Made by a program: the position numbers and the translations under genes. This document shows, one piece after another, positions 2,130 through 53,340 of a DNA stretch of 64,000 nucleotides. The stretch covers positions 16,554,001-16,618,000 of the forward strand of contig NC_043018.1 in the NCBI RefSeq assembly GCF_006345805.1, read 5' to 3'. Positions within the stretch are counted from its first letter, which is position 1. Every line of letters begins with the position of its first letter. The notes beneath the pieces were generated by a model. That model was given only the letters and a program-made list of their open reading frames with translations, had not been told where the DNA came from and searched no databases. Source of the DNA: Octopus sinensis. Taxonomy: Eukaryota.

Positions 2130-4725
2130 TTTTTCTTCATCTTTTAAATTTGCTTCCATTTCTTGCCGAGTGTCTTCCCGACTCATAGGGCAAAGAAACT
2201 CATAGTATACATTGGTAGGCCATTAAACTAAACTTACTAGTTCGTTTTTTTTTTTAAAAGTTAAATTAAAATACATGGGTAGTAACAGTTCTCACATCGA
2301 CAATGCTCTTCTCAATACGAGTGATGTACCAGTTAAGACAATCTTTTGCACTTCTTGCAGGGATGGTGAGCCAGGGATCATTCCCATATAATTTTCGGTT
2401 CCCTTCTTGATCATTCCTAGTGCTCCTACGATCACTGGTATTGTAACTGCCTAGAGATGCCACATTTTCTCAATTTCAATAAGTAGGTCTTTATATTTTC
2501 TGAGCTTGTCAAACTCTTTCGCTGAGATATTATGATCACAGGGGATGCTCATGTCGATCAATAAGCAAACTTTATTGTTTTGGTCTTTCACAACAATATC
2601 CGGTTTATTGGCTTTGATGGTTCGGTCTGTATGTACTGGAAAGTCCCACAGAATCGTTACAGTTTCTCCTTCAGTTACAGTTTCAGGGTGGTGATTATAC
2701 CACTTGTAGGCAGTTTTGATATTGTAATGCCGACTTATTAGCAAGTGTAGATATTGGCCAACTCTGTCATGTCTTAATTTATACTCCACTGGTGCTAAGA
2801 CTTTACATCCAGAGATTAGGTGGTCCACTGTTTCAATCATGTCGTTGCAGAATCGGCATTTTGGGTCTGCTCTATTTTTCATCACATTGGCCTGGTAGTT
2901 CCGGGTTAATAGGCTTTGATCTTGAGCACTCTCTGCTTTTAGCCCTGAGCTCCGTAGCCACTGATGGGTTTGCTTCTGGTCAACATCAGCTTGTTTGCTA
3001 CGGGCCACATATTTGCCGTGCAGAGATTTCTCCTCCCACCTATCAGCCAATTGCTCGTGCACTTTTTTCGTTGCCATTATTTTCACCTTCTTTGCAACAA
3101 TAGTTGCCGTACTTCCCTCGGGTTGTTCAGTTTGGGTATCCTGTACGAGATCAAAAGCAAATTTTTTGCTTTCCTTTATGATAGAATGAAGCTTCTTTCG
3201 TCTCGTGATTTTCCACGAGCTTTAGCATCCAGTCATTCGTTATTTCAAGATATTTGGCCAGTCCAATTGTGGTTGTTTTGTAAGCTAGTTCAAATTGGTT
3301 CATGCCTCGACCTCTTTGGGCTCTGGGAAGGTAAAGGTGATCTACGTCTGCCTTTGGGTGGTGCATCCTATTACAACTCAGCAGCTTGCGTATTTTCTTA
3401 TCTATATTCTTTACTTCACTCATATTCCAGTTCAACACATTGTAGCTATAAGTAACAACTGGAACTGCTAAGGAATTTATAGCTAACACCTTGATACGAG
3501 CATTTAGTTCAGATTTCAGGACTGCACGAACTCTCCTATAACATTCCTTCCTGATCTTCTCTTTCATGCTTGCATCCTGAATACCAGAGCCTTCATTTAT
3601 CCCTAAATATATTGTATGTTTCTTCTTCCTCAAGCTCTCTTATGACTGTGTCAACATCTAACACGATTGAATTTGTGGTCTTCACTTTCCCTTTCTGGAA
3701 AGTGGCCTTGGCACACTTCTCAAGTCCAAACTCCATCCCGATGTCATCGCTGAATGCTTTCACAGTGCGCAATAGGCCTTCAAGTTCATTATCGTCTTTA
3801 CCATAGAGTTTTAAGTCATCCATATAAAATAGATGGCTTATTTTTTATTGGCAATTTTATACCCATACCTTGTTCTGTTTAATTCGCTTGTAAGGGGTAT
3901 TAGGGCTATGCAGAATATTAAAGGTGAAAGTGAGTCACCTTGAAAAATTCCACAGTTGATGTTTATATTTTCTGAGGCAAGTACTCCATTAGAGTGGTAT
4001 AATTGGAGATTCGTATTCCACAACGACATATTGTGTTTCAGGAAGCTTGAAATCACAGGGGAAATTTTGAAGATGTCCAGCGATCTCAAGATCCATAGAT
4101 GCGGTATACTGTCGAAGGCCTTTTTATAGTCAATCCATGCGGAGCTGAGATTTCTGCGCTTGTTGTGACAGTTCTCAAGGATCATATGATTAATTAGCAG
4201 TTGATCTTTGCATCCGTATGAGCCTCGGCGGCACCCTTTTTGTTCAATGGGGAAAATATCGTTCTTCTCCATGAATGCATATGTTTTCTCCGCCAGGATA
4301 GATGTTAGGATTTTATACGTGGTGGATAGACAGGTTATAGGCCGATAGTTTTTTGGGAGGTTGGTTTCGTTATTCTTTGGGAGTAGGTAAGTAATACCAC
4401 TTGCTAACCATTCAGGTGTCTTCTTGGGGTCTCTCATAATTCCATTGAGCAGCTGAACTAGCCTACCGTGTGCGCATGGGAGCGATGCGAGCCAGAAATT
4501 CGGCACCCTATCTTTACCGGGGGATTTCCAATTATGGGCCTTTGTGAGTGCCTTTCTTAGGTCTGCTATTGTGATGTCTTCCCATGCTTGTTGTAAATTT
4601 TGGTAGGCTCCTTCAGTTTGTATAATCCAGTCTGCATTTATGTTGTACGTCTTCTTGTCACTCCAAATCCTTTTCCAAAAGTTTTGAACTTCTTCCATGG
4701 GAGGGGAAAAATAACTCTCAAAGAC
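2130..4725 (-). mobile_element. R4/Dong-clade non-LTR retrotransposon, 3' half (RT, CCHC knuckle, RLE endonuclease), decayed
   Basis: RT motifs (AWIDYKKAFDSIPH, GIFQGDSLSPL, LFYMDDLKLY), CRFC..ETVDHLISGC..RHDRV, ILWDF...KPDIVV..LLIDMSIP; broken into several frames; 3' end abuts an (AAT)n array. Confidence 0.85.
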
Positions 4726-8879: not shown

Positions 8880-9570
8880 TTGCAACCTCAGTGAAGAAGA
8901 TGCGAAAGACATCGGGATCACTCGCCTGGCAACGAATTACTGAAAACCCATCATCGTATCACGTGCAGCCTTCTTAAGAGTGGAACGACAGTGTGCACAG
9001 TGGGAACCTATGCACATTATATCTGTCAAAACGAATTTAGAAGTGATCATAACTCAATCACCTGTCGATCGTAACTCAATCACCTGTCTGCTCGACTACG
9101 AATGTCCGATGAACAACACCACAACATCAATAAATATTTTTGACAAGGAACCAACTTTGCAGCAACGGCTGCAAACGCGGGTGTCACCTTCCATAATCAC
9201 GAGGAGAGAACATTCAAGAAATATCAGGTAATCAGTGGCTACTATCAGTTTGTACCGGTTACGTCGAGACCTCAGGTGTTCTTGGACTTCATTCCCAGCT
9301 GAGGGATGAAGGCGGCTCATTGGATTAATGAGCATCAGGAAGTGGATGCTTCAATGTTCTTCGCGGCAACGCCATCAGGGTCACTACTGCGAGGCCCAGC
9401 TGAGCACACTATTCGTTCTGGGTTATGTGACCCATCGCCCTTCCCCTCAATTTCTACTGGTTCACATTCTTTTCTCTCTTTTCCTTTCTTATCTCTTATT
9501 TTTTTCCTATTTCTTTTTTAAAGTTTGTAAAATAGAACTCGGAGAATATATGTTTTTACAATATATAGCA
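8880..9570 (+). mobile_element. CRE-clade non-LTR retrotransposon 3' remnant (RLE domain)
   Basis: HEERTFKKY...YQFVPV..(ET)SG motif; homologous to 27230-27770 (-) including the aaatagaactcggag tail. Confidence 0.55.
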
Positions 9571-10067
9571 TAACACTGCAATGTAAATTCTTACCATTCA
9601 TATCGATAACTTAAAGGCAAACACCAAAGCGAAGAACAAACCACAAAGACTTTGTTACCGTTCAGTAACTTACAAACAAATAGCACAGTGAAAAACGAAG
9701 CACTAAGTATTTGTAATGCTTTAATAAATCTATTTAATTGAGATTTCATTACATTCGTCGTATTAATTTAGGTTTGTAAGAAACGTCTGAGATGTAAGTT
9801 ATGTTTTGTAGATTTTTTCTTCTTTTACCATTTCAGTTTTTGGTGCAACATACGTGAATTTCTTTCCAGGATAAACTACAAAATCAAACTTCTGCTCGTT
9901 GATATTTTATATTTCACTATGTCTCTTGATGTTTATTCAGAGTTTTCTACTATCATAGGATTCGACGATTGGTTAAATTACAAAATAGAAAAAGTAGTAG
10001 ATTTTCTCCTTGTATAACAACAATCTGACCTATGACATTTATCCAAAAGATTCAAAAGAGCAGAACG

Positions 10068-10269
10068 TCAATAATTTAGTAATTTTACAAGGAAAACGAG
10101 AATAGGGATTATACTTTGGCGTATACTGTTATGAGTGCCACGGGTGATATTTATAGGAATGCACCTGCATTTCTTTACTTCTATATCGCATTGACATTTC
10201 ATATCTGGGCAGCAATACCTGGTTGGCATAATGCGGAGACAAACTGTCTTTGAGCAGGAGGAGGACAAC
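10068..10269 (-). CDS. Gene A terminal exon 3b (8-Cys domain plus hydrophobic tail)
   Basis: Acceptor tattctgtatttacag; intact frame LSSSCSKTVC...CC...C.C...CRC...LLNY*. Confidence 0.88.
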
Positions 10270-12001
10270 CTGTAAATACAGAATATTGTAGTGAAGTAAT
10301 AAACTCATTAAATTATGGTTTCTCGTCAGGGAAGAAGCTGTTGCATTTTATTGACTTCGATAAATTGATAATCTTACAAGGAAAACGAGAATAGCGATTG
10401 CACTTTGGAGTATAGTGTTATGAGTGCCATGCGTGTTATTTTGTGAATGACACCTGCAACCCGATGTACCCAAAAGCATATACATTTCATACCTGGGCAG
10501 CAGGAAATGGCTGACATATATTTTTGACATATACTCGTTGTGCAAGCGTACCTGTAAATACAGAATATTGTAGTGAAATAAGAAACTCATTAAATTATGG
10601 TTTCTCGTTAGGGAAGAAGTTGTTGCATTTTATTGATGTCGAAAAAATCCAACGGGATGTGAATGTACATCATGCAGAACCGAAACAAATAGGACGGGTC
10701 ATATTTTTCCGTTCTTTCAAAAATTGTCATTTGTACTTTCTCCAGTATTTTTTAAAAAAACCAAGTCTATGAATATATATTTTCCGAATTTCATAAGTAG
10801 ATAAGTAGATGTAGACAGTGATATGGTAATTCTTTTCTACTCTTGGCACAAGGCCCGAAATTTTGGGAGAGTGGGGCAAGTCGAATAGATCGACCCCAGT
10901 AAACGACTGGTACATAATTTATCGACCCCGAAAGGATGAAAGGCAAAGTCGACCTCGGCGGAATTTGAACTCAGAACGTAGAGACAGACGAGATTTTCTC
11001 GTCTGCAATTGGGAAATCAAACCTGCATTTCTTTTGCTACGGTCATTGTGGTTTGTCCTATGTACTTCTCTACGCATCCTAAATAAGATGTGAAAACGAC
11101 GTTTACAAAAGAAGAGACAAAACAATCCTCCATCTTGAAACTAATTTTGAAATGGGAATCTTAACCTTTATATGCTTTTCAAATCTGGTTACTTTGGTAT
11201 ATTTGTCTCTGTATCAAATAAAAGGAAAGAAAGAAAGAGAAACCGGCTTTCTTGCCTCGTTGCTTCATTGTCATTTATTAAGGATGGATATTAATGTCTG
11301 TCTCTAAGTAAATGCTTAAGTTCTTGAAGCTGTATAGCATGTCACATTTGTGTATATAGTTTTGGCTAAATTAGCCTGCAAGAAAATAGTAATATGAATA
11401 TGAAGATCAACTTCTCTAGCGGTATCGCCCAGCGTTTCTCGGCTTTGTTTCGACCCTTTAGAATTAGAATTTTTGAAGAGTAATAATTTTGCATTATGTA
11501 GTTTCTTATTTTCTTTAAGAGAACATTTTTCTGGTTGAAACACACGGAAAAATGGCGACACAGCAATCAGAAAATCGTAAAAAGTAGGGGTTTTCATAGA
11601 AAAAAAAGCACCTTCGTGATGTAAATAATTTTTGGTTTTAATATGACCTGATTTGAATTTCTTCTCCTACCTTAAGGAAGAGCAAGCCTTCTTCTATCAT
11701 ACTCTTAATTTTGGTCAACTTACGCCGCAGGGTCTCAGAGGAGAGAGTGTAAGTTGAAGGCTACAAAACCTGCCACACACAGACAACTTCAGCTTTGTAT
11801 ATAGAGATAGATTAGTTCGAAAGGTGAAGGTGGAGTGGGTGCGAGGTGGAGTAAGACTGAGTAGAAGAGAGAGAAGGAGAAGTCAAGAAAAAGAGAAGAA
11901 GAAGTAGAGAGAAGTGATTAATATTAATATACTTAAGCCAAATGCGTTGTCTGGTGAGCTGAAGCGTGAGGCGATGAACGAGAGAAAAAGAGAATTCGAG
12001 G

Positions 12002-12046
<45 letters not shown>

Positions 12047-14134
12047 CGGCTGCTGTGATGGTAGTGGTAGTGGTGGAGGTGTGTTGACAGTGAAAATTAT
12101 CTATTTTTATGAACTAATTTTTTTTCTCATAGTGACCATTGCTTATCGTATAAGTGTAGTTATTTATTATATGCTCGCTTAAAATTTGATATTTGTTTAT
12201 AAAGGCCAACTCTGGATTCACAGGAAATACAGTTACAAGCTGCTCGAAAAAGAATGAGCAGACATGGAGCACGGATCAGAGGGGGAAAAGGTAAAAATAA
12301 TGCAGTCGATGACGTGAGGAAATGGATGCAGACAAACGTCAAAAATAATTAAAGAATACTTCTTTCTCTCTTAAACAGGTCCTCTATACGTTTCCCATTC
12401 CGTGGAATTTCGACGGGTCCCAATAACAGATATAGATAATAGAATTCCATTCAGTTTTCCTCTACCATATTCATTCAGCTGGTATTGGTCGCTGGTCGCG
12501 CTGGGCGTATAGCAGAAGACACATGTTCAGGGAATGAACGCTCGCACTTGTTAACTAGGCAGTCATGCTTGCACCTATGGCTGAATGAATTGTTGATGAA
12601 TTTTCTAGGCAAAATAGAAACGAATATTATTCAGTTTTTACTCTTTATTCTTTTGCTTGTTTCAGTCATTTGACTGTGGCCATGCTGGAGCACCGCCTTT
12701 AGTCAAGCAAATTTATTCTTTGTAAGCCTAGTACTTAATCTATTGGTCTCTTTTGACGAACCTATAAGTTGTAGAGACGTAAACACACAAGCAACGGTTG
12801 TCAAGCGATATTGGGAGGGGTGGGACAAGCACAGACACACAAACATATACACACACCTACATATATAAATACATATATACGACGAGCTTCTTTCAGTTTC
12901 CGACTACCAAATCCACTCACAAGGCTTTGGTCGGCCGAAGCTATAGTAGGAGACACTTGCCCATGTTGTCATACAGTGGGACTGAACCCGGAACCATGTG
13001 TTTGGTAAGCAAGCTCCTTACCACACAGCCACTCCTACGCCTATATTACTCGTGAAAATTTTCTCCTATCGTCTCACTTGATATATTCCCGTTTCATATT
13101 CACTTTTACGCCGAAACTACAATCAGGAATGAGTCTCAAGAAAGGAACTGCGCCAATATTGATGACCGCTCTACTATAGACACATGCCATGAAACCTTAC
13201 TAGAAGGCGCTTGTCTATTAAATCGATAACATATGTAGATATGTAGATCTTACCCTTTAGTCGTATTACTAAAACTTACAGAAGCTCCTCTCTTTTGACG
13301 GACGGAAGCGACATCTGAAAGAAATACTAAAATACATATGGAAGCATTAGAAGTCTATTTACCAAAGTTTCGTGTAGAAATACACAAAATACCCATGAAG
13401 CACTCAACAGGTAATTCATTGAATGGAGGATAACGTATTTATGGTAAGACGATCTGAAACAAGATGCAGGATCATGAAGACTGGAACTCGAAGTTCCTCA
13501 CTCCTACACTTAAATATGGCTCATCACTGTAGTGATGGATGTGTTTAATACATAAAAGGAGATAAAAAAAACCAAAGGAGCAATAAAAAGGAATGACAAA
13601 AAAAAATACACGTGAAACATTATATTTATAGCACTTGCTGAATCTCTTTTGTAATTATTTTAATAATTAAGAATTCTAAGGGAGGCGGCGGTGGAGAGCT
13701 GGCAGAATGGTTAGCTGGACGAGCAAGGTGCTTAGTGTCCTTTCGTTCGTGTTTACGTTCTGAATCAAATACAGGAGTAAGAGATGAGAGCACACCACTA
13801 GAATCCTTCCCGATTTGTATCAGTTATGTTGTTAATTAAATGTTATATATTATATAGAAGAATCTTAATTCCGTATACTTGGTCTATGCGTAGTTTTGAT
13901 AAATAGAGTTATTTATTTAAAAGCTGTAATTGCATATAAATTGGGTACACCCGGAACACCGTTAAGGTAACTTTATTCATTTTCCTCCTTCCCGCCCTTC
14001 TATTTTCCGCCTTTTTCCCTACTACATTTCGGATTGCTATAAAATAAAAGAAATTTCTAATTATACTTACCTTGTTTATCCGAGAAGGTGTATGAAATGA
14101 ATACACAAAACAATAGGACGCTGGTACCTTTCAT
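10068..14134 (-). CDS. Secreted 8-Cys knottin-like (agatoxin-framework) peptide precursor, gene A, 108 aa; exons complement(14071..14134, 13254..13314, 10068..10269)
   Basis: Spliced ORF MKGTSVLLFCVFISYTFSDKQ-DVASVRQKRGASVSFSNTTKG-LSSSCSKTVCLRIMPTRYCCPDMKCQCDIEVKKCRCIPINITRGTHNSIRQSIIPILVFLVKLLNY*. Donors G|gtaagt and GG|gtaaga, acceptors tttcag and tttacag; phases 1 and 2 fit. Signal peptide, RQKR site, 8 Cys, hydrophobic C-terminus. Every exon has a paralog in gene B. Confidence 0.85.
10348..10551 (-). pseudogene. Gene A tandem-duplicated alternative exon 3a (8-Cys domain) with apparent 1-nt deletion
   Basis: Same acceptor tattctgtatttacag, 282 bp upstream of exon 3b. Phase-2 frame YACTTSICQKYMSAISCCPGMKCIC, then 17 nt (not 18) before CRC; the tail HSQNNTHGTHNTILQSAIAILVFLVRLSIYRSQ* is in another frame. 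Confidence 0.75.
10820..10995 (-). mobile_element. tRNA-derived SINE family 3, partial
   Basis: ttctgagttcaaattccgccgaggtcgactttgcctttcatcctttcggggtcgataaatt on minus strand. Confidence 0.75.
12645..13042 (-). mobile_element. tRNA-derived SINE family 1 (head ggcgcaggagtggctgtgtggtaag)
   Basis: A-box/B-box-like head, internal (TA/TG) tract, tail cagtcaaatgactgaaacaagtaaaaga. Confidence 0.8.
13254..13314 (-). CDS. Gene A coding exon 2 (propeptide with RQKR furin-type site)
   Basis: 61 nt, phase 1 to phase 2; acceptor tttctttcag, donor gtaaga; paralog at 24047-24107. Confidence 0.8.
14071..14134 (-). CDS. Gene A coding exon 1 (signal peptide MKGTSVLLFCVFISYTFSDKQ)
   Basis: ATG at 14134, preceded by acceptor cag|gtgcgtg (exon starts 14141); donor gtaagt at 14070; 4 nt differences from gene B exon 1. 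Confidence 0.85.
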
Positions 14135-15886
14135 CACGCACCTGATGATAAACACAAAAAACGAGAGTGATTAATACAAAAGCATTTTTCTGAGAAAATA
14201 AGCAAAAGTCTTCAGCTGAAATTTAGGTAACAATTATCTTTTCGCTGTTCAAATATATTTCACTTAAAAAGCCAAGATTTACCATTTAAACAATAAGTAA
14301 TATGGCTAATTTAATTGCACCAATAGTACTAATGTACTAAAAATACGACTGTAAGTACATATTTTGGTGAAGATGACGCTTTCGAAGCATTTGTCCGTAA
14401 ACATTCTCCGTAGTGTTAACAGTGAATGAAATGTTCTTACTTCAATGTTTTCTGACTTCTGTCGCAAACAAATATGTAAGGCTTGTCACTTTGCATTGGA
14501 CAGAATGTTCTATGTGAAATATACAGTCAAAAATATTTTCTCTGTTTTCTATAACCAAAGTCAGCATTTCCTTCTCATTCCAGTGTATATTTAATTAACG
14601 AATTGCACTGGTATCTTACACCGTACCTAAAGAAGCTTTATTGTTTGCTGTTAAACATATGTGTCGTTTGATCCTTACACAGAAAATTAGGTAATCAACA
14701 TCTTTCAAATACAATACTTTCTGAAACAGCAGAAAATTACGTATGAGTTTTAAGTAATGACCTCTCTATTTATTTTATCTATTCAGCTAGTAATCTCGGC
14801 AAGGAAAAACTAATTAAAGAATCAATGAACAGGTACTCCAGGTATAAGTCTCATTTCAGAAGAAAGTTTGTACAGGTTCATATCTGGCAATTTGGAAGAT
14901 TCCAACAAGCATATCCTGCACCTGCGATAAATGCATCTTATTTCAGCCTGAAGAATACGCCATTGCTACCTGGAAAGGAACGTAACCGTTTTGCTGTAAT
15001 TGTCGAAAAATGTCTTCAAGACTATACAATCATCTTCAAACATACATTGTTGCCTGACTAAGACACAAACACACCAACTAAAACGCTATATGAAAAACAC
15101 ATTGTTTTGACTGCTATGACAAAGCTACTCCAGAACCAGAATGTATTCACACGATTTAAAACAAAAAATAATGGTCAATCAACTGAATACAAACAGCAAC
15201 CTACGGATAGCAAAATTGGTCAAATAGTGTTCTATGGAAAAGAGGGAAGCAGTTGGCCAGTGTTGCAAAGATCAGCAGTTTGTTGGATGTGAATGTTTTG
15301 ACGTAAAGTAAGAAAATGGGAACATCTTTCGTAAAATAATGAGAAATGTATAACACAAACATCCAGCCAAAATAGGTTCACTTGTTTCTTAGCAAACGAT
15401 TTACATTAATTAAAAAACAAAATTTACAAAAGCTCGACTTCATCCAAAACTGAAGGGGTCAACTGATTCCCTTTCATCAAATACAATCGATGAGATATAA
15501 AGTGAAAATCAGTAAATCATTCCGGTTATCCTCTCTCTTTGCAGATCTTGGATTGTTCACATGCAAACAGGCAACAAACGGTTTAAGCTCTGCCACTACC
15601 ACCATCATCATTACCATAACTGTGTAATGCTATTACTTAATCACATACAGTCGCAAAGAATAATTTATTTGTTACATACTTATTAGGTTCGAACGGTATT
15701 TATTCAGAGTTCAGTAGACGTTCTCTTGTGCAAAGTTCGAAATAATTGATGATAATATAATATTAGTTATCAAAAGAGCTTCTACCGTTCGATACTACGG
15801 CTTTCGTTTTGTTCTCTCTTTTTCAGTTTGTACTCCTTACCGTTTCGTCTTCTTGCTTACACTCACATATTTACATACATACATAC

Positions 15887-15926
<40 letters not shown>

Positions 15927-15981
15927 GCGAACATACATACACACCTATGATCTATGCATATATATTATATATGTATATATC

Positions 15982-16085
<104 letters not shown>

Positions 16086-17606
16086 AACAGCGTGATTTAT
16101 ACGATTTTATTCAATATTTATTAACTCTTGTAATTCAACAGCTGTGTGAAATAGTGAATAGAAAACGTCAATTGAAATTATATCAAATTTATGTCTGAAG
16201 TTACGCCAACGTTCATCATGGGAGACGTCAAAATTTAGGATTGAAACACGATAATGCTTATGTTGTTTTTTTTTTACACAGCAACATATAATTGATTCCT
16301 AAAAATCGATGCAAAGTTCAGATCCAAGTGATTCCCAATCCAGATTACATATGGGAAGAAGATTCTAATTTCTGTTGCTTGGCATCTCGACAACTGAATC
16401 ATGTTTGGAAAATCCCACAATACCTTCTGAGTAGAGATCGTGAATGGGAGCTATCTTTAATTTAGCTACGTCCATGTTTGCTAGAGCATGGAGAGACTCT
16501 TCGATTATATTTCCAAAACCAATGAAAACTCTTTTTTTTAGTTCTGGAAACCATCTGCTAACTTTGGAAGATTCCTTGACAGTAATTTTAATGCATCTGG
16601 CTTGAAATCGGTTGCAATGGCTTGAATCACGATGAAAAATTAAGTAGAAGAACTATAAGAGTGATTGAAATAAGACAAATCATTCAGGAAAGACGATAGT
16701 ATGCGGACTCTAACAACTCCTATCCTCTGTGAATTGACCGCTGATTCATTGGTGGGGGTGGTGAAGAATCACGTGGACAAATTACTGAATAGGTTTAGTA
16801 TTTTTAAAGCCTTCGATGGTATAGAATATTATCAATGGGATGAGTGGTATGATGAAGTCGAAGACGGAGAGGTGTGGTGTGTGGTAAAATGTGTTTTCCC
16901 AACAACAGGTTTCCCGCTTCAGTCCCATAGTGAGGCATTATAGGCTAATGTCTTCAAATATGTCCCCGGAACGCAAAAACCTTTGTGAGTAGAATTGGTA
17001 GACGGTAGATGAAAGAAACATGTCGTGTGTGAATATTCTAGTAATTTACAGAAAAACAAATGACGCAGACATGTGTATGAACAACAAGCCGGTGTATCAT
17101 TTTGACGCTCTGAAAAGTGAGAAAGTCTTTTACGTTTCGAGCCAAAGCTCTTCAACAGAAAGGAATAAGAGAAATTCATTTTTACATATGTCTATTTAGT
17201 GACCAAGCATATATATGTACGTCCGTGTTGAAGTTAAGCCCAGCTCTGACCTTGTATTGAAATCTTTTACGTTCCCCACACCGAATATTACCCATTAAGG
17301 CGTTATATCTGTCTGGTTCGGCAGGGGTTTAACCCGATTAACGGTTTCGATATACTCCTACACACCAAATATATCTTTGCACCCATAAACATAATTTTTC
17401 AGATTTACTTCTACCGACCTACCTACCTACCTACCTACCTACCTACCTACCTACCTACATATCTACCTACATACCTTACGAAGGTTTACAGATTGAAACC
17501 GGTACTAACCTTTACAAAATGTATTTCATGAGGAAATTATTTTAGCATTTTCAACCTTATCTTATTTTCCTTATACATATCAAATCGTGTGTCACTTTCA
17601 ACATTC

Positions 17607-19074: not shown

Positions 19075-19218
19075 AGTGGTGAAAACCACTTGCTGCAAGA
19101 GTTCAGTCCCACTGCGTGGAACCTAGGGTGAAGTGTTTTCTACTACAGCCTCGGGCCAACCGACGCCTTGTGAGTGGATTTGGTAGACGGAAACAGAAAG
19201 GATCCCGTCGTATATATG

Positions 19219-19297
<79 letters not shown>

Positions 19298-19490
19298 TTG
19301 TCCCCCAACATCGCTTAACAACCGATGCTGGTGTGTTTACATCCCCGTAACTTAGCGGTTCGGCAAAAAAGACCGATAGAATAAGTACTAGGCTCACAAA
19401 GAATAGGTCCTAGGGTCGATTTGCTCAACTGAAGGCGGTTCTCCAGCATGGCCGCAGTCAAATGACTGAAACATTAAAAGAGTTAAGGAG
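19075..19490 (+). mobile_element. SINE family 1, 5'-truncated
   Basis: Matches 30127-30535. Confidence 0.75.
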
Positions 19491-19586
19491 TAAAAGAGTA
19501 ATAAGTACATATTTAGGTTCTCATGTACTTAGGTTCTTTTACGATAATTCTCGCACGGTGTTGTCGTGCGATTGCAGTCGGTGGTA

Positions 19587-22858: not shown

Positions 22859-22922
22859 ATGAAAGGCATCAGTCTCCTATTGTTTTGTGTATTCATTTCA
22901 TACACCTTCTCGGATAAACAAG
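22859..22922 (+). CDS. Gene B coding exon 1 (signal peptide)
   Basis: Acceptor tctgcag at 22851, ATG 22859, donor gtaagt 22923. Confidence 0.85.
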
Positions 22923-24601
22923 GTAAGTATAATTTTAAATTTCTCTTATTTTATAGTCATCAGAAATGTAGTGGGATAAAAAGCGGTAATAGAAAGGCGG
23001 AAAATAGAATAACGTTACCACAGCGGTCCTTCGGATGTACATCATTTATATGTAGTTACAGCTTTTAAATTGTTGTTTTCCCTTCTCGAGCCGCGCCTGG
23101 CTCATTAGGGCCTGTTTCCCGGTTTCCTTGGTGTCCCCCACCTGGACGGGACGCCGGTCCGTCGCAGGTGAGCTGCAAGATGCAGGAGGAAAGAGTGAGA
23201 GAAAGTTGTGGCGAAAGAGTCAGCAGAAGTTCGCCATTACCTTCTGCCGAAGCCGCGTGGAGTTTAGGTGTTTCGCTCATAAACACATACATCACCCGGT
23301 CCGAGATTCGAACCCGCGATTCCTCGACCGCGAGTACGCTGCTCTAACCACTAGGCCATATGCCTACACGCTGCTCTAACCACTAGGCCATATGCCTACA
23401 AGCTGCTCTAACCACTAGGCCATGTGTCTCCACACAGCTTTTAAATAAATAACTCTATTTATCTACACTACGCATAGTCATACGGAATTGCACTTCTTCT
23501 ATATAATGTATAACATCTAATTAACAATATAATTAAATAATCTTTTATAATACAAATCCGGAAGAATTCAAGTCGTGTAATCCGATTTGTTACTCCTATA
23601 TCAGAGCAGAGCGGGCGAAATGCCGCTGAGAATATTGTCTATCGAGCTAGCGATTCTGCCAGTTCGCCGCTGCTTTTGCGATTCTTAACTATTAAAATAA
23701 TTACAGAGATTCAGCAAGTGCTGTATATATAATGTTTCACGTGTCTTTAGTTTGTCTTCTTGTCATTGCTTGTTATTATTCCTTTGGGTTTTTTTTTATC
23801 TCCTTTTATGTATTAAAAACATCCATCACTACAGTGATGAGCCATATTTAAGTGTAGGAGTGAGGAACTTCGAGTTCCAGTCTTCATGATCTTGCATCTT
23901 GTTTCAGATCGTCTTACCATAAATACGTTCTCCTCTATTCAATGAATTACCTGTTGAGTGCTTCAGGGGTATTTAGTGTATTTCTACACGAAACTTTGGT
24001 AAATAGACTTCTAATGCTTCCATATGTATTTTAATATTTCTTTCAGATGTCGCTCCCGTCCATCAACAGACAGGAGATTATGTAAGTTTGAGTAATATGA
24101 CTTACAGGTAAGAACTACATATCTACATTTCTTATAAATGTAAATAATTTAGTATTGGCAATGCGGGAAATTGGCATAATCGTTAGCACTCTGGATAAAA
24201 TACCTAAAGGCATTTCTTCCGGCTTTATGTCTTGAGTTGAAATTTTGCCGATGTTGACTGCACCTTTCAAAGTTACTGGGTTGATGAAATATATACTAGT
24301 TGAGAAATAGGGTCTAGACAACAGAGCAGCACACTCCATCAACGTTTCAGGCCTTGTGAGTATAATAGGAAATTTATTAGTATTGACAAATTCATATTCT
24401 GCATAAAAGAATATCTGAAAGAGGGAGATATGAGGCGAGACGTATCAAAGAGAAAATTATTTTTCACGAGTCAAAATCAAATATTTTTTTTAATATTATC
24501 CCTACAAAATCAATTAACAAATTTATTGAAACCGTGACTATGGCTGTGTAGTTAAGAGATCCACTTCCTAACCACAAAGTTTGCAGATTCAATACCTGAG
24601 C

Positions 24602-24939: not shown

Positions 24940-26042
24940 GATAGATAGATAGATAGATAGATATATATATAGAGAGAGATAGAAAATGTGAACTGATATT
25001 TTCATATTTAATGGATCTCTTGTATTCAACTCTACATCGCCGTCGTTGATGTTCAGGTTTTACATGGATTGTAAAAGGATAAGGCAATGGCTGCCGCTGT
25101 AGTTTACATCATATAATCCATGCGATGAAGAACGGCATAATCCAGGCTGTAGTCTCTATCCTGACCTCCCTTTCAATATTATATTGACATTCAATTCGTG
25201 TCGTGAGTATGAAGAACATACATTTTTCCTCAGATGGTTGACAAGCATCTGAGAAATCTGGCGGTTCACGAGGATACAGCAGCAAATCTATTCAGCTTTA
25301 GCTGTCACTGTCTACAGTTTCGATTGAGATTCTGGCTATACAGCAACCCCTCGACTATCGCGGGTGTTACGTTCCAAAATATCCCGCGTTAAGTGTAAAT
25401 CCGTGAATTAGAATCTATATTGTACATATTTTTTATTATTTTTAGGATTTGTACATATTTATTTTACTATAAATGCAAAACAACATCACGGAGGTACCGA
25501 CGTAAGCTTAAAGAATAAACCGCGATAAGTGAATCGCGATATGGCGAGGTATTACTGTATATTTATATACTTAGTTGCTAAGAAATTCGGGATAATACAG
25601 TCATTAATCGTTAAAAGAAGGGAAAAATATGACTTGTGGTATTTGTTTCGGTTCTGCATGTCGTGAGTTCAAGTCTCCTTAGATTCTTTAGATCTATTGA
25701 TCTCGATAAAATAAACACCAGTATCGTCTAATCCCTTCGCTAAATATTCCTTGACTTCTCCCTTAATTAGAAACCATAATTTAATAATGTCTTTTATCTC
25801 CAACTATATTCTGTATTTACAGTAAGAGGGTTAAGAGAATGAATCCTAAATGTAACGAAATGTTCTGTGACGGTAGCGGACGTCCAACACGCTACCCCTG
25901 TTGCCCGGGTTTGAGATGTGTATGTAGAACATTACTTGGTTGCAGGTGTAGTTCACAAAATACGATCCATGTGGCTCATAGCGTTATACTCCAAACTGCA
26001 ATCGCTTTTCGGATTTTCATTGTAAATTTACCATCTTATTGA
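22859..26042 (+). CDS. Secreted 8-Cys knottin-like peptide precursor, gene B, 114 aa; exons 22859..22922, 24047..24107, 25823..26042
   Basis: Spliced ORF MKGISLLLFCVFISYTFSDKQ-DVAPVHQQTGDYVSLSNMTYS-KRVKR-MNPKCNEMFCDGSGRPTRYPCCPGLRCVCRTLLGCRCSSQNTIHVAHSVILQTAIAFRIFIVNLPSY*. 64+61+220=345 nt; canonical splice sites; RVKR site directly before the Cys domain. Confidence 0.87.
23065..23432 (-). mobile_element. tRNA-derived SINE family 2, diverged copy with triplicated 5' end
   Basis: Homologous to 26836-27222; 32-bp head unit repeated three times. Confidence 0.7.
24047..24107 (+). CDS. Gene B coding exon 2 (propeptide)
   Basis: Acceptor tttctttcag, donor AG|gtaaga; 61 nt as in gene A. Confidence 0.8.
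24601..24985. repeat. (GATA)n/(GACA)n microsatellite in gene B intron 2
   Basis: Direct reading. Confidence 0.95.
25341..25557. mobile_element. pogo/Tigger-like MITE in gene B intron 2
   Basis: TA|cagcaacccctcg...cgaggtattactg|TA terminal inverted repeats with TA flanks and internal cgcg motifs. Confidence 0.7.
25823..26042 (+). CDS. Gene B terminal exon 3 (KRVKR, 8-Cys domain, hydrophobic tail)
   Basis: Acceptor tattctgtatttacag identical to the gene A exon-3 acceptors; open to TGA at 26042. Confidence 0.88.
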
Positions 26043-29535: not shown

Positions 29536-30126
29536 TGAGACACTTGAAGGAAAATTATGCATTTTATTGAACTCATTGTATGCATATGATTAGTGTCGCC
29601 ACCACCATAACCACTGACATCATCACCATCATCATCATATCATCATCATCATCATCATCAATAATAGCACCGACAAAAATCAACATCACCTTCCTTATCA
29701 TCATCATTATCATCATCATTATCATCATCATTATCATCATCATTATCATTATCAATATCATAATCAGTGACGTCCTCAATATTATAGTCAACATCAAGAA
29801 ATATCCATAGCAAACAAATAAATAAATAAAAGCCAGGAGACAGCAAACGTAACAAGTCTGATCCTATTTTATTTATCTGGAATGAGGCATGAAATCAACT
29901 TAATATTTATCAATAGGAGTGTTTGATAGCAGAGGAGGTAGTTGGATTAGTTTAGCTGATGAAAGGAGTGTACAAGCTAACGTTTCCAGTCACTTGTCCT
30001 TCGCTAGTAAGTCAGTCAAAAGCAGCAAAATAAAGAGATTATACCACTGGTAAGTAAATAACTCAGTTTTTTTTTCAAAACGAAGATTCTCTTCTTTCTC
30101 AGCATCACTTTAAAAAGAAACAAGTA

Positions 30127-30535
30127 GGCGCAGGAGTGGCTGTGTGGTAAGCAGCTTGTCTACCAACCACATGGTTCCGGGTTCAGTCCCACTGCGTGGC
30201 ACCTTGGGCAAGTGTCTTCTACTATAGCCTCGGGCCGACCAAAGCCTTGTGAGTGGATTTGGTAGACGGAAACTGAAAGAAGTCTGTCGTATATATGTAT
30301 ATATATATATATGTGTGTGAATGTGTTTGTGTGTCTGTGTTTGTCCCCCTAGCATTGCTTGACAACCGATGCTGGTGTGTTTATGTCCCCGTCACTTAGC
30401 GGTTCGGCAAAAGAGACCGATAGAATAAGTACTGTGCTTACAAAAGAATAAGTCCCGGGGTCGAGTTGCTCGATTAAAGGCGGTGCTCCAGCATGGCCGC
30501 AGTCAAATGACTGAAACAAGTAAAAGAGTAAAAGA
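30127..30535 (+). mobile_element. SINE family 1, full length
   Basis: Near-identical to 41878-42275. Confidence 0.85.
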
Positions 30536-30858: not shown

Positions 30859-32487
30859 CAGTTGCGGTCAAAATGTTCAGAACGGCATTGTTTTCGTCAG
30901 AAAAGTAGATATAATTTTTTTATCAAAGTTGTTTTATATTCTATAATTTTCACAGACAATAAATACGATATTATTTGTTATTGCCTGAGATTTTGGTGCA
31001 ATTTGAGAGGATAATACAAAAGTTATGGATGATTTAGTGATTTACTGCAAAACCCATGGCGGCCAAAATGATCAGAACGGTTGCTTTTACTCCGTGTTTT
31101 AGTATATTTAACCGGCGAACTCTAATGTTTTGAATTTGTTTACGTGACGGTTCGTTTACTAAACATTAGTAAGAATATTTGCAGTGTACTTTGTTAATAT
31201 AATGCCACTTACTCCGTTACCAATTCGTCAGCAGATTATTAAGCTTCGAAGGAAGGATAATTTAAGTATTGGATCTATTGCAAAGATTGTTAACAAGTCA
31301 AAAAGTGTTGTACACGGTATTCTTAAGGTCTACGATGATTGTGGTTCGTGTGAAGCAAGAAAGTTTACAGGTAGGCCAAGAAAAAACGACCAAGAGAGAA
31401 GATCGTGCTATGGTAAAGTTGGTTAAAAAGGACAGATTTAAAACTGCTGCTGCTGTTTCTCGGAAAATGAGCATTGTATTGAAGAAAACTTTATCTCGAA
31501 AAACTGTCTCGTCGTTTAGTTGAACATGACCTACAAGCAAGAGCACCTGCAGTGAAGCCACTGATCAGCTCCAAGAATAAAAAGTGTCGTCTTACCTTTG
31601 CAACCGAACATGTGTTGTGGTCTCAAGAAAAATGGCAAACGGTGCATTTCAGTGATGAATCTAAGTTTATGCTATTTGGCTCAGATGGGAAAAGGTACGT
31701 TTATCGAAAAGTAGGTGAAAAATTGTCGCCTAAATGCCTTAAGACTAGTGTTAAATTCGGTGGAGGAAGTGTCATGGTTTGGGGGATGATATCTGGAGAT
31801 GGTGCGGGCCCTTTGGTGCGATTACATGAAAAGGTAAATGCAGGAGTTTATAAACAACTTGTAAAAGATCATGTCTTGCCTGTGCTGAGAAATTCAACTA
31901 TGCGACCACCCATATTCATGCAGGACAATGCCCCATGTCACAAGGCTAAGGTGGTCATGAACTTCCTCAAGGCTGAAAAGGTTATTGTTATGGATTGGCC
32001 TGCTCAAAGCCCAGATCTCAAGCCTATTGAAAATGTGTGGAATATTCTAGGAGAACGTTCGAAAGCCAGAAATCCTAAAACAACTGAGCAATTATGGAAT
32101 GCCCTTCTGGAAGAATGGAATAAGATCACCCAGCAAGAAATTGAAAATTTAATTTCCTCATGCAGTCGAAGATGTCAGAGTGTGATTGAAGCTAAAGGGC
32201 TTCACACTAAATATTAAATAATTCCAGTATTTTCTGTCATGTTTGATTATTTTGTTATTTTTTCAACCGTTCTGATAATTTTGGCCGCCATGTGTTTTGC
32301 AGAAAATCACTAAATAATCCATAAAGTTTGTATTATCCTCTCAAATTACACCAAAATCTCAGACAATAACAATTAATATTGTATTTATTGTCTGTAAAAA
32401 TTATAGAATATAAAACTACTTTGATAAAAACTTATACCTACTTTTCTGACGAAAACAATGCCGTTCTGAACATTTTGGCCGCAACTG
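30859..32487 (+). mobile_element. Full-length Tc1-family (DD34E) transposon, 1629 bp, with ~220 bp IR/DR terminal repeats
   Basis: TA|cagttgcggtcaaaatgttcagaacgg...ccgttctgaacattttggccgcaactg|TA; inner repeat ggccaaaatgatcagaacgg. Confidence 0.95.
31202..32217 (+). pseudogene. Tc1 transposase with two frameshifts
   Basis: MPLTPLPIRQQII...TGRPRK / TTKREDR...SRKTVS / KPLIS...FSDESKF...FMQDNAPCH...WPAQSPDLKPIENVW; 34 residues between the second D and E. Confidence 0.9.
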
Positions 32488-33262: not shown

Positions 33263-36200
33263 ATGGTGGTGGTGGTGGTGGTGGTGGGTTGGTGATGGTG
33301 ATGGTGGTGGTGGTGATGGTGGTGGTGGTGGTGGTGGTTGGTGGTTGATGGTGGTGGTGATGGTGGTGGTGGGGTGGTGGTGATGTGGTGTGGTGGTGGT
33401 GGGTGTGATGGTGGTGATGGGGTGGGTGGTGGTGGTGGTGTGGTGATGGTGGTGGTGGTGGTGGTGGTGATGGGTGTGATGGTGGTGGTGGTGGTGTGGG
33501 TGGTGGTGGGTGTGGTGGTGGTGGTGATGGTGGTGGTGATGGTGGTGGTGGTGGTGGTGGTGATGGTGGTGGTGGTGGTTGTGATGGTGGTGATGGTGGT
33601 GGTGGTGGTGGTGGTGGTGGTGGTGGGTGGTGGTGGTGGTGTGGTGGTGAGGTGGTGGTGTGGTTGGTGGTGGTGGTGGTTGGGTGGTGTGATGGGTGGT
33701 GGTGGTGTGGTGGTGGTGGTGATGGTGGTGGTGATGGTGGTGGTGGTGGTGGTGGTGATGGTGGTGGTGGTGGTTTTGATGGGTTGGTGGTGTGTGGTGG
33801 TGGTGGTGGTGGTGGGGGGGTGGTGGTGGTGGTGATGGTGGTGGTGGGTGGTGGTTGGTGGTGGTGGTGATGGTGGTGGTGGGTGGTGGTGGTGTGGTGA
33901 TGGTGTGGTGGTGGTGGTGATGTGTGGTTGGTGGTGGTGGTGGTGGTGGTGGTGATGGTGGTGGTGGTGGTGGTGATGGTGTGGTGGTGGTGGTGGTGAT
34001 GGTGGTGAGGTGGTGGTGGTGGTGGTGATGGTGGTGGTGGTGGTGTGTGATGGGGTGGTGGGTGGTGGTTGAGGATGGTGGTGGTGGTGGTGAGGTGGTG
34101 TGGTGGTGGTGGTGGTGGTGGTGGTGGTGGTGGTGGTGATGGTGGTGGTGGTGGTGATGGTTGGTGGTGGTGGTGGGTGGTGGTGGTTGATGGTGTGTGG
34201 GTGGTGATGGTGGTGATGGTGGTGGGTGGTGGTGAGGTGGTGGTGGTGGTGATGGTTGGTGGTGGTGGTGGTGGTGTTGTGATGGTTGTGGTGGTGATGG
34301 TGGTGATGGTGTGGTGGTGTGTTTTGGTGGTGGTTGGTGGGTGTGGTGGTGGTGGTGATGGTGGTGGTGGTGGTGTGTGAGGTGGTGGTGGTGGTGTGGT
34401 GGTGTGGTGGTGGTGGGGGTGGTGGTGGTGATGGTGGTGGTGAGGTTGGGTGGTGTGGTGGTGGTGATGGTATGGTGGTGGTGGTTTGATGGTGGTGGTG
34501 GTGGTGGTGGTGGTGGTGTGATGGTGGTGGTGGGGTTGGTGATGGTGGTGTGGTGGTGGTGGTGGTGTGGTGGTGGTGGTGGTTGGTGGTTGATGGTGGT
34601 GGTGGTGGTGGTGTGGGTGGATGGTGGTGGTGGTGGTTTTGATGGTGGTGATGGTGGTGGTGGTGGTGGTGGTGGTGATGGTGGTGGTGGTGGTTGTTGG
34701 GTGGTGGTGGTGGTGGTGGTGATGGTGGTGGTGATGGTGGTGGTGATGGTGGTGGTGGGGGGGTGGGTGGTGGTTGGTGGTGGTGGTGGTGTGGTGATGG
34801 TGTTGGTGGTGGTGGTGGTGATGGTGGTGGTGGTGGGTGGTGATGGTTGTGGTTGGGTGATGGTGGTGATGGTGGTGGTGGTGTGGTTGATGGTTGTGGT
34901 GGTGGTGGTGGTGATGGTGGTGGTGGTGGTGTGGTGGTGGTGGGGTGGTTGATGGTGTGATGGTGGTTGGTGGTGGTGATGGTTGGTGGTGGTGATGGTG
35001 GTGGTGATGGTGGTGGTGGTGGTGATGGTGTTGGTGATGGTGGTGGTGTGGTGGTGGTGATGGTGGTGGTGATGGGTGGTGGTGGTGGTGATGGTGGTGG
35101 TGAGGTGGTGGTGGGTGGTGATGGGGATGGTGGTGGTGTGGTTGGTGGTGGATGGTGGTGGTGATGGTGTGGTGGTGGTGGTGGTGATGGTGGTGGTGAT
35201 GGTGGTGGGGGTGGTGATGGTGGGTTGGTGATGGTGGTGGTGGTGGTGGTGGTGGTGGTGGTGATGGTGGTGGTGGTGGTGATGGTGGGTGGTGGTGATG
35301 GTGGTGGTGGTGGTGGTGGTGGTGGTGATGGTGTGGTGGTGGTGATGGTGTGGTGGTGGTGGTGTGGTGATGGGTGGTGGTGGTTGTGGTGGTGATGGTG
35401 GTGGGGTGGTGGTGGTGTGGTGGTGGTGGTGGTGGTGGTGGTTGATGGTGGTGGTGATGGTGGTGGTGGTGGTGGTGGTGATGGTGGGTGGTGGTGTTGA
35501 TGGTTGGTGGTGGTGGGTGATGGTGGTGATGGTGTGGTGGTTGGGTGGGGTGGTTGTGGTGGTGATGGTGGTGATGGTTGGTGGTGTGGATGGTTGGTGG
35601 TGGTGATGGTGGTGATTGGGGTGGAGTGATGGTGGTGGTGGGTTGGTGTGGGTGGTGGTGGTGGTGAGGTAGTGGTGGTGGTGGTGATGGTGGTGGTGTG
35701 GTGGTGAGGGTGGTGGTGGTGTGTGTGGTGGTGGTGGTGGTGGTTGTGGTGGTGATGGTGGTGGTGGTGGGTGGTGATGGTGGTGGTGGGTGGTGATGGT
35801 GATGGTGGTGTGGTGGTGATGGTGTGTGGTTGATGGGGTGGTGGTGGTGGAGTGATGGTGATGGTGGTGGTTGGTGGTGATGTGGTGGTGATGGTGGTGG
35901 TGGTGGTGGTGGTGGTGATGGTGGTGGTGGGGTGTGATGGTTGTGGTGGTGATGGTGGTGATGGGTGGTGATGGTGGTGGTGGATGTGTGGTGGGTGTTG
36001 GTGGTGGTGGTGGTGATGGTGGGTGGTGGTGGTGATGGTGGTGGGGGTGGTGTGGTGATGGTGGTGATGGTGGTGGTGGTGGTGATGGTGGTGGCGGTGG
36101 TGGTGGTGGTGATGGTGGTGTATGGTGGTGTGGTGATGGTGGTGGTGATGGTGGTTGTGGTGGTGGTGATGGTGGGTGTGGTGATGGGGTGGTGGGTGGT

Positions 36201-39200: not shown

Positions 39201-39741
39201 GGTGGGGTGATGGTGATGGTGGGGTGGTGGTGGTTGGGGTGGTGGGTGGTGGTGATGGTGGTGTGGTGGTTGTGATGGTGGTGATGGTGGTGGTGGTGGT
39301 TGTGGTGATGGTGGTGGTGGTGGTGGTTGATGGTGGTGGTGATGGTGGGGGGGGGGTGGTGATGGTGGTGGTGATGGTGGTGGTGGGATGGTGGTGGGTG
39401 GTGGTGATGGTGGTGGTGGTGTGGTGATGGTGGTGTGGTGGGGTGATGGTGGTGGTGGTGATGGGTGATTGTGGTGGTGGTGGTGATGGTGGTGGTGATG
39501 GTGGTGGTGGTGATGATGATGGTGGTGGTGGTGGTGGTGGTGGTGATGGTGGTGGTGGTGATGATGATGGTGGTGGTGGTGGTGGTGGTGGTGGTGATGG
39601 TGGTGGTGATGGTGGTGGTGGTGGTGATGGTGGTGGTGGTGGTGGTGATGGTAGTGGTGATGGTGGTGGTGGTGGTGATGGTGGTGGTGGTCATGATGGT
39701 GGTGGTGATGGTGGTGGTGGTGGTGGCGGTGTTGGTGGTTG
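33263..39741. repeat. 6.5 kb degenerate (GGT/GAT)n array
   Basis: Almost pure G/T with frequent 1-nt indels. Confidence 0.95.
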
Positions 39742-43800: not shown

Positions 43801-44689
43801 AGGCATACAGTGGACTGATGTCCATCATTTGTGACGCTGTTTACTCTCTTTTTTCTCTTTCACTTGTTTCAGTCATTTGACTGCGGCCATGCTGGAGCAC
43901 CGCCTTTTTAGTCGAGCAACTCGACCCCGGGACTTATTCTTTGTAAGCCCAGTACTTATTCTATCGGTCTCTTTTGCCGAACCGCTAAGTGGCGGGGACG
44001 TAAACACACCAACATCGGTTGTCAAGCAATGCTAGGGGGACAAACACAGACACACAAACACATACACACACACATATATATATATATTATACATACATAT
44101 ATACGACAGGCTTCTTTCAGTTTCCGTCTACCAAATCCACTCACAAGGCTTTGGTTGGCCCGAGGCTATAGTAGAAGACACTTGCCCAAGCTGCCACGCT
44201 GTGGGACTGAACCCGAAACCATGTGGTTGGTTAGCAAGCTACTTACCACACAGCCACTCCTGAGGAATTTCAAACAGAAGACAAGGCATTATGCTAAGGC
44301 TATGTTGCTTTGAAACTTTGTAGCATGCCGGAAACGGGTGAGCATATTATCGCTCACTGCATGACTACATTCACATACACACATGTCTGTGATGGGGAAA
44401 ATGTACACACACACACGCACACACACACAGACACACACACACAGACACACACACACAGACACACACATACACGCACTTACACACACATACACACACACGC
44501 ACACACACAGAGACTCACACACACAACACACACATACACACACATACACGCACACACAAACACACACACACAGACACGCACACACATACACACACACACA
44601 CATACACACACATACACACACACGCACGCTCACACACACACACCACACACGCGTACACACATACACACACCACGCACACACGAACACAC

Positions 44690-52402: not shown

Positions 52403-52914
52403 AGATATAATGAAATTATAACAGGGTAAATGTTAGATGAGAGAAGAAACTATTTAAAACAAAATTCTCCGCTGAAAATATTTTTTCCATAAATGCTGAA
52501 AACCCACAGTACTAGAGAGTATCATGTCACATAGCTGATATTAAGGCCTGCTAGTCCTAATTAAACCAAAAACCTTCCAGCTGGGATCATCTCGTCTTTT
52601 GGTGGACAATTCTTTTCAGCCATAAACGAAAACTAGTCAGAAGTTAGAGCGACGCTATCACTGCAGGATGAAGAACCAAATTTTACAAGAGCCAATACCT
52701 TGCTGTCTGCACACCGTTTGCTGACAATTCGCTGTTTAGAGCCGTACACATTACAGAAGCGTTTTCAGAATTTACAATCAACTGTCATAGACTGTCATCA
52801 GGTATCTGTTTAGATGCAGACTTGGAAATATCAAGAGGATATAGGAATTAAAGGGAACCAAAATCGATTCGATTCTAGTAACGAATCGACTGTTCACGAA
52901 ATGCAAGATATATA

Positions 52915-53340
52915 CTCTTTTACTCTTTTACTCGTTTCAGTCATTTGACTGCGGCCATGCTGGAGCACCGCCTTTAGTCGAGCAAATCAACCCCGGGGAC
53001 TTATTCTTTGTAAGCCCAGTACTTATTCTATCGGTATCTTTTGCCGAACCGCTAAGTTACGGGGACGTAAACACACCAGCATCGGTTGTCAAGCAATGCT
53101 AGAGGGATAACACAGACACACAAACATATACACCACATACATATATATATTATATATTATAATATAATACCTATATACGACAGGCTTCTTTTAGTTTCCT
53201 CTACCAAATCCACTCACAAACAAGCTTTGGTCGGCACGAGGCTATAGCAGAAGACACTTGCCCAAGATCCCGCAGTGGGACTGAACCCGGAACCATGTGG
53301 TTGGTTGGCAAGCTACTTACCACACAGCCACTCCTGCGCC
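52915..53340 (-). mobile_element. SINE family 1
   Basis: Reverse complement of family consensus. Confidence 0.85.

Follow-up and report, generated by a model that had tools for sequence, protein, structure and literature searches.

A gene-conversion tract ending inside exon 2 as the probable source of exon-over-intron divergence in an inverted Octopus gene pair

Gene conversion drives concerted evolution in tandem or inverted duplicates, as in globin and other multigene families. Conotoxin genes, mostly split over three exons, encode a signal, a pro and a mature part, of which the signal is conserved and the mature part variable (PMC10561478). In snake-venom phospholipase A2 (PLA2) genes, the introns are more conserved than the coding exons (Nakashima et al. 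1993, reviewed in PMC7285919). Here we describe a pair of inverted genes, A and B, in a 64,000-nucleotide stretch of Octopus sinensis DNA (NC_043018.1, positions 16,554,001 to 16,618,000; hereafter the window). Our subject is exon 2 of gene A, which a first-pass annotation had described as more diverged than its flanking intron and, on the basis of that contrast, had assigned to diversifying selection. We find a short tract of gene conversion from B into A in the neighbouring intron, and the contrast most probably stems mainly from this resetting of the intron, beside a fast and roughly neutral pro-region exon.

Like conotoxin genes, the A/B family has three short coding exons, long repeat-rich introns and tandem multigene arrays, together with a strongly conserved signal, fast pro and mature parts and an invariant cysteine scaffold. 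Unlike conotoxins, it has another cysteine framework and a conserved hydrophobic C-terminal tail of ~30 residues, and a profile search of the family detected no conotoxin-superfamily homology. With the snake-venom PLA2 genes, it shares introns and a signal region that are more alike between copies than the other coding parts, with non-synonymous rates (KA) near or above synonymous rates (KS). In A/B, however, intron conservation is limited to a single short tract with species grouping and a mapped breakpoint, and elsewhere the intron matches or exceeds exon 2 in divergence. Because the tract is species-grouped and its breakpoint mapped, the intron similarity of A and B reflects concerted evolution. 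Indeed, and in line with conversion in other duplicates, the tract is short, within-species paralogs are more alike in it than orthologs, its breakpoints are sharp, the transfer is non-reciprocal and directional, and the sister species carries independent tracts. The one peculiarity of A/B is the position of the tract end, within a 61-nt exon and beside the loss of A-B alignability; otherwise there is nothing unusual about it.

The window is AT-rich eukaryotic DNA, rich in microsatellites and transposon remains. Self-comparison revealed that 9139-16218 is duplicated in inverted orientation at 27671-21019, resulting in head-to-head genes A (minus strand) and B (plus strand), whose signal exons face each other 8.7 kb apart (Table 1). 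Each is a three-exon precursor gene consisting of a signal, a pro-region, and an eight-cysteine knottin-like domain with a hydrophobic tail. Exon 1 of gene A lies ~760 bp upstream of exon 2 on the minus strand, exon 2 is bounded by the acceptor tttctttcag and the donor GTAAGA, and exon 3 of both genes opens in the phase that the 61-nt exon 2 leaves. The predicted A and B proteins match only uncharacterised Octopus bimaculoides proteins, namely the products of LOC128250513 and LOC128250514 (Obi513 and Obi514, or 513 and 514; 75% and 60% identity to B) and isoform X1 of LOC128250516 (Obi516, or 516; 55% identity to A). The GT-AG structure of 64/61/202-226 nt reproduces the NCBI models of these three loci exactly, the gene model of the first-pass annotation is borne out, and we infer the splicing of A and B in the window from these orthologs. 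The donor of the 61-nt exon 2 is the sole donor that keeps exon 3 in frame. A 35-nt exon 2 ending at an inner GTAAGT (exon bases 36-41) was ruled out, as it runs into an immediate stop in exon 3; this inner donor is also not conserved in 516 or in three of the O. vulgaris copies, and it is the 61-nt form of the exon that appears in the NCBI models.

In the pairwise MAFFT alignment of gene A with its inverted duplicate B, 11 of the 61 exon 2 bases differ (exon bases 9, 16, 21, 25, 31, 34, 44, 52, 57, 59 and 60), compared with 6 of the 166 bases of intron directly upstream (Fisher p=7.6e-4). The signal exon shows four differences in 64 bases, two of which are synonymous. When the frame is set by exon 1 (phase 1), all 11 exon 2 changes are non-synonymous and fall in 10 codons. 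Both the counts and the amino-acid-altering nature of the exon 2 changes are exactly as the first-pass annotation had given them; it is their explanation that differs.

A four-way alignment of A, B, Obi513 and Obi516 was scored for informative sites that follow either orthology or a concerted pattern (A=B, 513=516). Along it, 22 orthology sites are followed by a run of 18 concerted sites and then by 26 or more orthology sites, with orthology resuming from A 13284; a run of 18 concerted sites occurred 0 times in 100,000 permutations (p<1e-5). In gene A, the tract thus delimited takes in the final ~260 nt of intron 1 and no fewer than 12 nt at the start of exon 2, and measures about 275 bp at its minimum and 390 bp at its maximum. 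Identity between A and B along intron 1 is uneven, being ~60-93% over most of its length and 96-98% in the last ~260 nt, and A-B divergence amounts to 9/261 (3.4%) in the tract versus 148/619 (23.9%) in the other intron sequence (p=9e-16). Neighbour-joining trees with 500 bootstraps split the tract sequences into window plus O. vulgaris on one side and O. bimaculoides on the other (100%), whereas the segment just downstream separated B, 513 and 514 from the rest (100%), which excludes the split seen in the tract. Concerted sites run up to exon base 12 and orthology sites start at base 31, which places the end of the tract within exon 2. The first-pass annotation had itself named a recent conversion tract ending at the exon as a competing account of the intron similarity, and such a tract is what the sites reveal, stopping 12-30 bases into the exon.

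Comparison with O. bimaculoides gives the direction of the transfer. In the tract, A and 516 differ by 24.5%, about double the 12% of their other introns, while B and 513 differ by 12.7% and A and 513 by 13.1%, indicating that B was the donor and A the acceptor. For B and 513, divergence is 11.5% in distal intron 1 and 14.8% in all non-tract intron; the tract therefore stands at the ordinary intron level and is not under constraint. In addition, the A-B divergence of exon 2 (18.0%) does not differ from that of unconverted intron (p=0.34), so that the exon has diverged at background level. The excess of exon 2 over the intron thus most probably arose because the intron was reset by conversion, and not because the exon was sped up.

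The duplication itself is old. In the exon 2 peptides, A shares GASV.F with Obi516, and B shares GDYVSLSN with Obi513/514, which dates the duplication to before the divergence from O. bimaculoides. Orthology also governs the informative sites of distal intron 1, of exon 2 in its 3' half, of intron 2 and of the entire exon 3 region. As old paralogs, A and B each have an O. bimaculoides ortholog of their own. Their non-coding sequence has for the most part diverged by 20-25% or resists alignment, and intron 2 of the A and B types can hardly be aligned (36-52% mismatches). Conversion was also looked for in the exon 3 region and none was found, the orthology pattern holding throughout.

Mechanistically, a non-reciprocal recombination with B as donor and A as acceptor overwrote these ~275-390 bp, from the 3' end of intron 1 into the first 12-30 bases of exon 2, after which the ~3% differences gathered in the tract. 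Conversion probably stopped where usable homology ended, because A and B already differ by 23% in the 3' half of exon 2 and can hardly be aligned in intron 2. Independently, the pro-region experiences hardly any purifying selection, if any, and changes at a roughly neutral or somewhat higher rate, with the signal peptide and the eight cysteines held constant. O. bimaculoides has tracts of its own. Obi513 and Obi514 are 99-100% identical up to exon base 49; they show 2/260 differences in the intron tract and 4/61 in exon 2, all four past exon base 49, which repeats the exon-over-intron contrast of A and B and indicates a second conversion tract that also ends inside exon 2. The tract shared by 513 and 516 is 95-100% identical and ends ~170 bp before exon 2.

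Table 1 Coordinates of the A/B gene pair, the conversion tract and other features (window positions unless another sequence is named).
Feature	Coordinates	Strand	Description
Conversion tract in gene A	13303..13576 (minimum; maximum 13674-13285)	minus	B-type sequence
Tract counterpart in gene B, putative donor	23783..24058	plus	tract divergence figures in the text
Gene A exon 1	14071..14134	minus	ATG, signal peptide MKGTSVLLFCVFISYTFS + DKQ; 64 nt; ends phase 1; donor GTAAGT
Gene A exon 2 (interval studied)	13254..13314	minus	61 nt, phase 1 to 2; pro-region (D)VASVRQKRGASVSFSNTTK(G)
Gene A exon 3, upstream tandem copy	10374..10551	minus	1-nt deletion, 6 Cys left, aberrant tail
Gene A exon 3, intact copy	10068..10269	minus	C-x5-C-x9-CC-x4-C-x-C-x7-C-x-C, 30-residue hydrophobic tail, stop
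Gene B exon 1 (signal peptide)	22859..22922	plus	head-to-head with gene A
Gene B intron 1 insertion	23071..23433	plus	~360 bp; three tandem ~31-nt units (GCTGCTCTAACCACTAGGCCATATGCCTACA-like)
Gene B exon 2	24047..24107	plus	(D)VAPVHQQTGDYVSLSNMTY(S)
Exon-3-like relic in gene B intron 2	24981..25184	plus	degenerate; tail part readable, stop codons upstream
Gene B exon 3	25823..26042	plus	KRVKR processing site, 8-Cys domain, hydrophobic tail, stop
Hydrophobic C-terminal tails (approximate)	A 10158-10071; B 25950-26039		~30 codons
Dispersed ~400-bp repeat	12644-13043, 19101-19495, 30125-30532, 41875-42280, 43839-44261, 52913-53348	both	copies 71-90% identical
Imperfect (TGG)n microsatellite	33264-39739		6.5 kb, ~2,166 units, 78% matches
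Transposon remains	2451-4698	minus
Transposon remains	31552-32217	plus
O. vulgaris locus L004	OX597835.1:7562061-7638077		76 kb; at least 6 A-type units

The general pattern of a conserved signal with fast downstream parts, which the first-pass annotation had likened to toxin evolution, holds across the family. By the NG86 method, the ratio of non-synonymous to synonymous rates (dN/dS, ω) is 0.05-0.5 in the signal exon, with the exception of 0.82 for the closely similar pair 513-514. In exon 3, in which every cysteine is kept, it is ~0.5-1.2, and in exon 2 it is 1.2-4.3 between clades and 0.39 for the orthologs B and 513. A hand parsimony count over five full genes gave ~23 non-synonymous and 5 synonymous changes in exon 2. 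Our own implementation of the one-ratio codon model (M0), run on 11 exon 2 sequences of 19 codons, estimated ω at 1.65-1.96, which is above 1 but not significantly so (twice the log-likelihood difference, 2dlnL, 1.2-2.3); values of 0.5 or less were rejected (2dlnL 8-11). The pro-region is free of ordinary purifying selection, and this dN/dS analysis neither establishes nor dismisses positive selection on exon 2.

Several observations speak for diversifying selection that drives exon 2 past the neutral rate, and weigh against a conversion tract beside a roughly neutral exon as the whole account. The chance that none of the 11 A-B changes is synonymous under neutrality is 0.03-0.07, depending on the transition bias, and thus marginal. 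Among seven A-type copies, exon 2 has 16/61 variable sites versus 51/386 in the flanking introns (p=0.012), with a nucleotide diversity of 11.5% versus 4.1% and 6.5% in the neighbouring introns, and between A and its ortholog 516, exon 2 differs by 21% versus 12% in the introns (p=0.045). Within the exon, the first 30 bases hold four A-B differences compared with 9/261 in the adjoining tract (p=0.034), and the four differences in exon bases 9-25 are all derived on the A side. The conversion account is also weakened by tiny samples (19-21 codons), by a codon model that assumes a single tree, which recombination violates, and by a splicing of A and B that is predicted from orthologs, not from own-species transcripts.

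The nature of the changes in A is a further argument for selection. P>S, H>R and T>R are common to all O. vulgaris A-type copies and hence older A-type features, Q>K is found only in gene A of the window, and together they give the motif R-Q-K-R in A. Gene A is without the K-R site that is found just before the Cys domain in B, 513 and 514, and the RQKR motif could represent a relocated processing site.

As the main reason why the exon exceeds the intron, diversifying selection is nevertheless unlikely. Its intron yardstick is the conversion tract itself, exon 2 is not above unconverted intron in the A-B comparison (18% vs 24%), and the elevation of ω above 1 is not significant. For B and 513, exon 2 (11.5%) is likewise not above the intron (14.8%), in addition to their low ω. 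Moreover, synonymous changes are frequent in the A-type array (by hand count ~4 synonymous and 13 non-synonymous of 17), so that weaker homogenisation of the exon fits as well as selection. What stands of the first-pass inference is that selection is possible, though unproven; the exon-versus-intron contrast from which it was drawn does not carry it. Positive selection on exon 2 may act on top of the conversion mosaic.

We consider it improbable that gene A is a decaying pseudogene whose exon 2 merely drifts. The exon 3 copy nearest exon 2 is frameshifted, the K-R site before the Cys domain is missing from A, ω is ~1, and exon 2 has suffered a deletion in two of the O. vulgaris copies. This deletion is, however, in frame (12 nt), all 11 copies examined have an open exon 2 with intact splice sites, the second exon 3 copy of A has all eight cysteines, tail and stop, and purifying selection acts on the signal exon of A. 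In addition, an N-x-T sequon is present in 8 of 11 copies, being lost in 516 and changed to N-P-T in two O. vulgaris copies. The exon 3 copies of gene A have a tandem period of ~282 bp, and the upstream one, whose frame shifts after the sixth Cys, is probably a pseudo-exon. The O. vulgaris model CAI9738802.1 contains a similar frameshifted exon 3 reading (…YRVAGVEHKIK…YSKV), indicating that the frameshifted version is old and multi-copy.

It is highly improbable that constraint on a functional element outside the coding sequence, such as an enhancer, a splicing regulator or an intronic RNA, holds the intron stretch near-identical beside a normal exon: although B shares 96-97% identity in the stretch with each of the A-type copies examined and the stretch adjoins the splice acceptor, it diverges between species as ordinary intron does (12.7-13.1%), groups strictly by species, matches no RNA family in Rfam, and is rearranged in its 3' part in the 516 copy of O. 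bimaculoides. An RNA gene or hidden exon in the stretch was discarded on the same Rfam result; as for a hidden exon, the one acceptor-like site (cag/ATCG) meets a stop in the exon 1 phase when translated by eye.

When the family profile was searched exhaustively with HMMER against 1.84 billion representative proteins, nine matches were returned, eight of them from Octopus. The Octopus models matched were seven from O. bimaculoides, on one chromosome, and three badly fused ones from O. vulgaris; the ninth match was weak (E=2e-5), to a 1124-aa repetitive protein. Judged by this search, the tandem family of A and B is uncharacterised and confined to Octopus, and a literature search on octopus knottins and the A-B family found no description. 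In the O. vulgaris locus (Table 1), A-type units follow each other every ~9-11 kb in tandem, one of them inverted, and are annotated as one fused 250-aa 'hypothetical protein'; the best identity to the window is 92-95%.

Eight cysteines are invariant in 10 family members (C-x4-C-x9-11-CC-x4-5-C-x-C-x4-6-C-x-C), and the family shows the features of a knottin framework, a CC doublet and at least six Cys in ~35-40 residues. This C...C...CC...CxC...CxC arrangement is shared with spider inhibitor cystine knot (ICK) peptides of the omega-agatoxin-IV, mu-agatoxin, delta-palutoxin and psalmotoxin-1 type, as is a predicted C-terminal beta-hairpin, and the best profile matches in the PDB and the best fold matches are all of this class. 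The PDB profile search listed only spider ICK toxins (E=0.7-7, the best being an omega-agatoxin at E=0.69), namely omega-agatoxins IVA/IVB, mu-agatoxin-I, delta-palutoxins, purotoxin-1 and an atracotoxin-family peptide. The AlphaFold2 (AF2) model of the Cys domain alone, with a predicted local distance difference test score (pLDDT) of 71.7, forms a beta-hairpin, and its top Foldseek match was psalmotoxin-1 (template modelling score, TM, 0.62; E 0.85), followed mostly by ICK peptides. The full-length model (pLDDT 54) was too poor for a fold search, and its matches were weak. No match of the family to this class was significant (Pfam E=2-3; PDB profile E at least 0.69; Foldseek E at least 0.85), and its long hydrophobic tail aligns to none of the matched 35-49-residue chains. 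In Pfam, the predicted proteins hit only Toxin_7 (E=2) and Toxin_9 (E=3), and a Pfam assignment was dropped as both are below cut-off. From its sequences, the family appears to behave like knottin-type secreted peptides, these searches assign it to no known toxin family, and its peptides are predicted to be secreted and processed.

Paralogs resemble each other more closely in the part after the last Cys (…SSQN.IH…ILQT.IAF.IF.VNLPSY) than in the cysteine loops. This part is a predicted helix and reaches a mean hydropathy of up to +1.8. This tail resembles a glycosylphosphatidylinositol (GPI)-attachment or membrane-anchor signal, which would make the products tethered rather than free peptides.

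Further exon-3-like copies were found in the O. bimaculoides stretches L001 (12339-12485) and L002 (21899-22120, 26880-27101 and 30604-30392), and such extra copies sit within or between family genes both there and in the window. Duplication seems to affect the mature-peptide exons more frequently than entire genes. In O. bimaculoides, an unannotated family signal exon (L001 2706-2768, minus) lies 7.2 kb upstream of LOC128250513 and faces it, and LOC128250516 begins a further 3.6 kb off; signal exons are head-to-head there as in the window. The ~360-bp insertion in intron 1 of gene B is present neither in gene A nor in the O. bimaculoides orthologs, indicating a lineage-specific insertion in gene B. 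By eye, it looks like a short interspersed nuclear element (SINE); ARAGORN found no transfer RNA in the window, including this insertion.

The remainder of the window is dominated by repeats. Copies of the dispersed ~400-bp repeat occur also in the O. vulgaris locus, and one lies in intron 2 of gene A, ~200 bp downstream of exon 2. The (TGG)n microsatellite has a GC skew near +1 and 60% G+C over 6 kb. Among the transposon remains are reverse-transcriptase open reading frames of a non-long-terminal-repeat (non-LTR)-type element (Pfam RVT_1, E=2e-17, and a weak match to zf-RVT), together with a fragment of a transposase of the Tc1/mariner type (DDE_3, E=6e-16).

The observations can be joined into one broader but speculative and, as a whole, rather doubtful reading, in which A and B are members of an undescribed, Octopus-restricted tandem family of knottin-like prepropeptides, with a signal kept uniform by conversion, a pro-region diversified by selection, a new RQKR site and a role as tethered channel modulators. 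Recurrent conversion would keep the signal exon and the adjacent intron uniform, while selection would keep the pro-region and the cysteine-loop cassettes different, with tracts entering exon 2 selected against. H>R and T>R, present also in the O. vulgaris A-type copies, together with Q>K would have built a furin-type RQKR that replaces the lost K-R site of gene A at the exon 2/3 junction. The conserved tail could then make membrane-tethered (GPI-signal-like) channel modulators instead of free toxins.

For multigene families, the case shows that a conversion tract which resets an intron can leave the neighbouring exon looking the more diverged of the two, and the neutral yardstick must be unconverted sequence or orthologs. 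While the conversion seen here is an ordinary phenomenon, the gene family is uncharacterised and of moderate interest. The locus reveals an Octopus-lineage family of predicted small, secreted eight-cysteine peptides with the hallmarks of toxin-like families, namely a conserved signal, fast pro and mature parts, invariant cysteines, tandem expansion and duplicated mature-peptide exons. Should its products prove to be venom components or neuro- or chemosensory modulators, this would be a second molluscan case of such evolution, independent of the cone snails.

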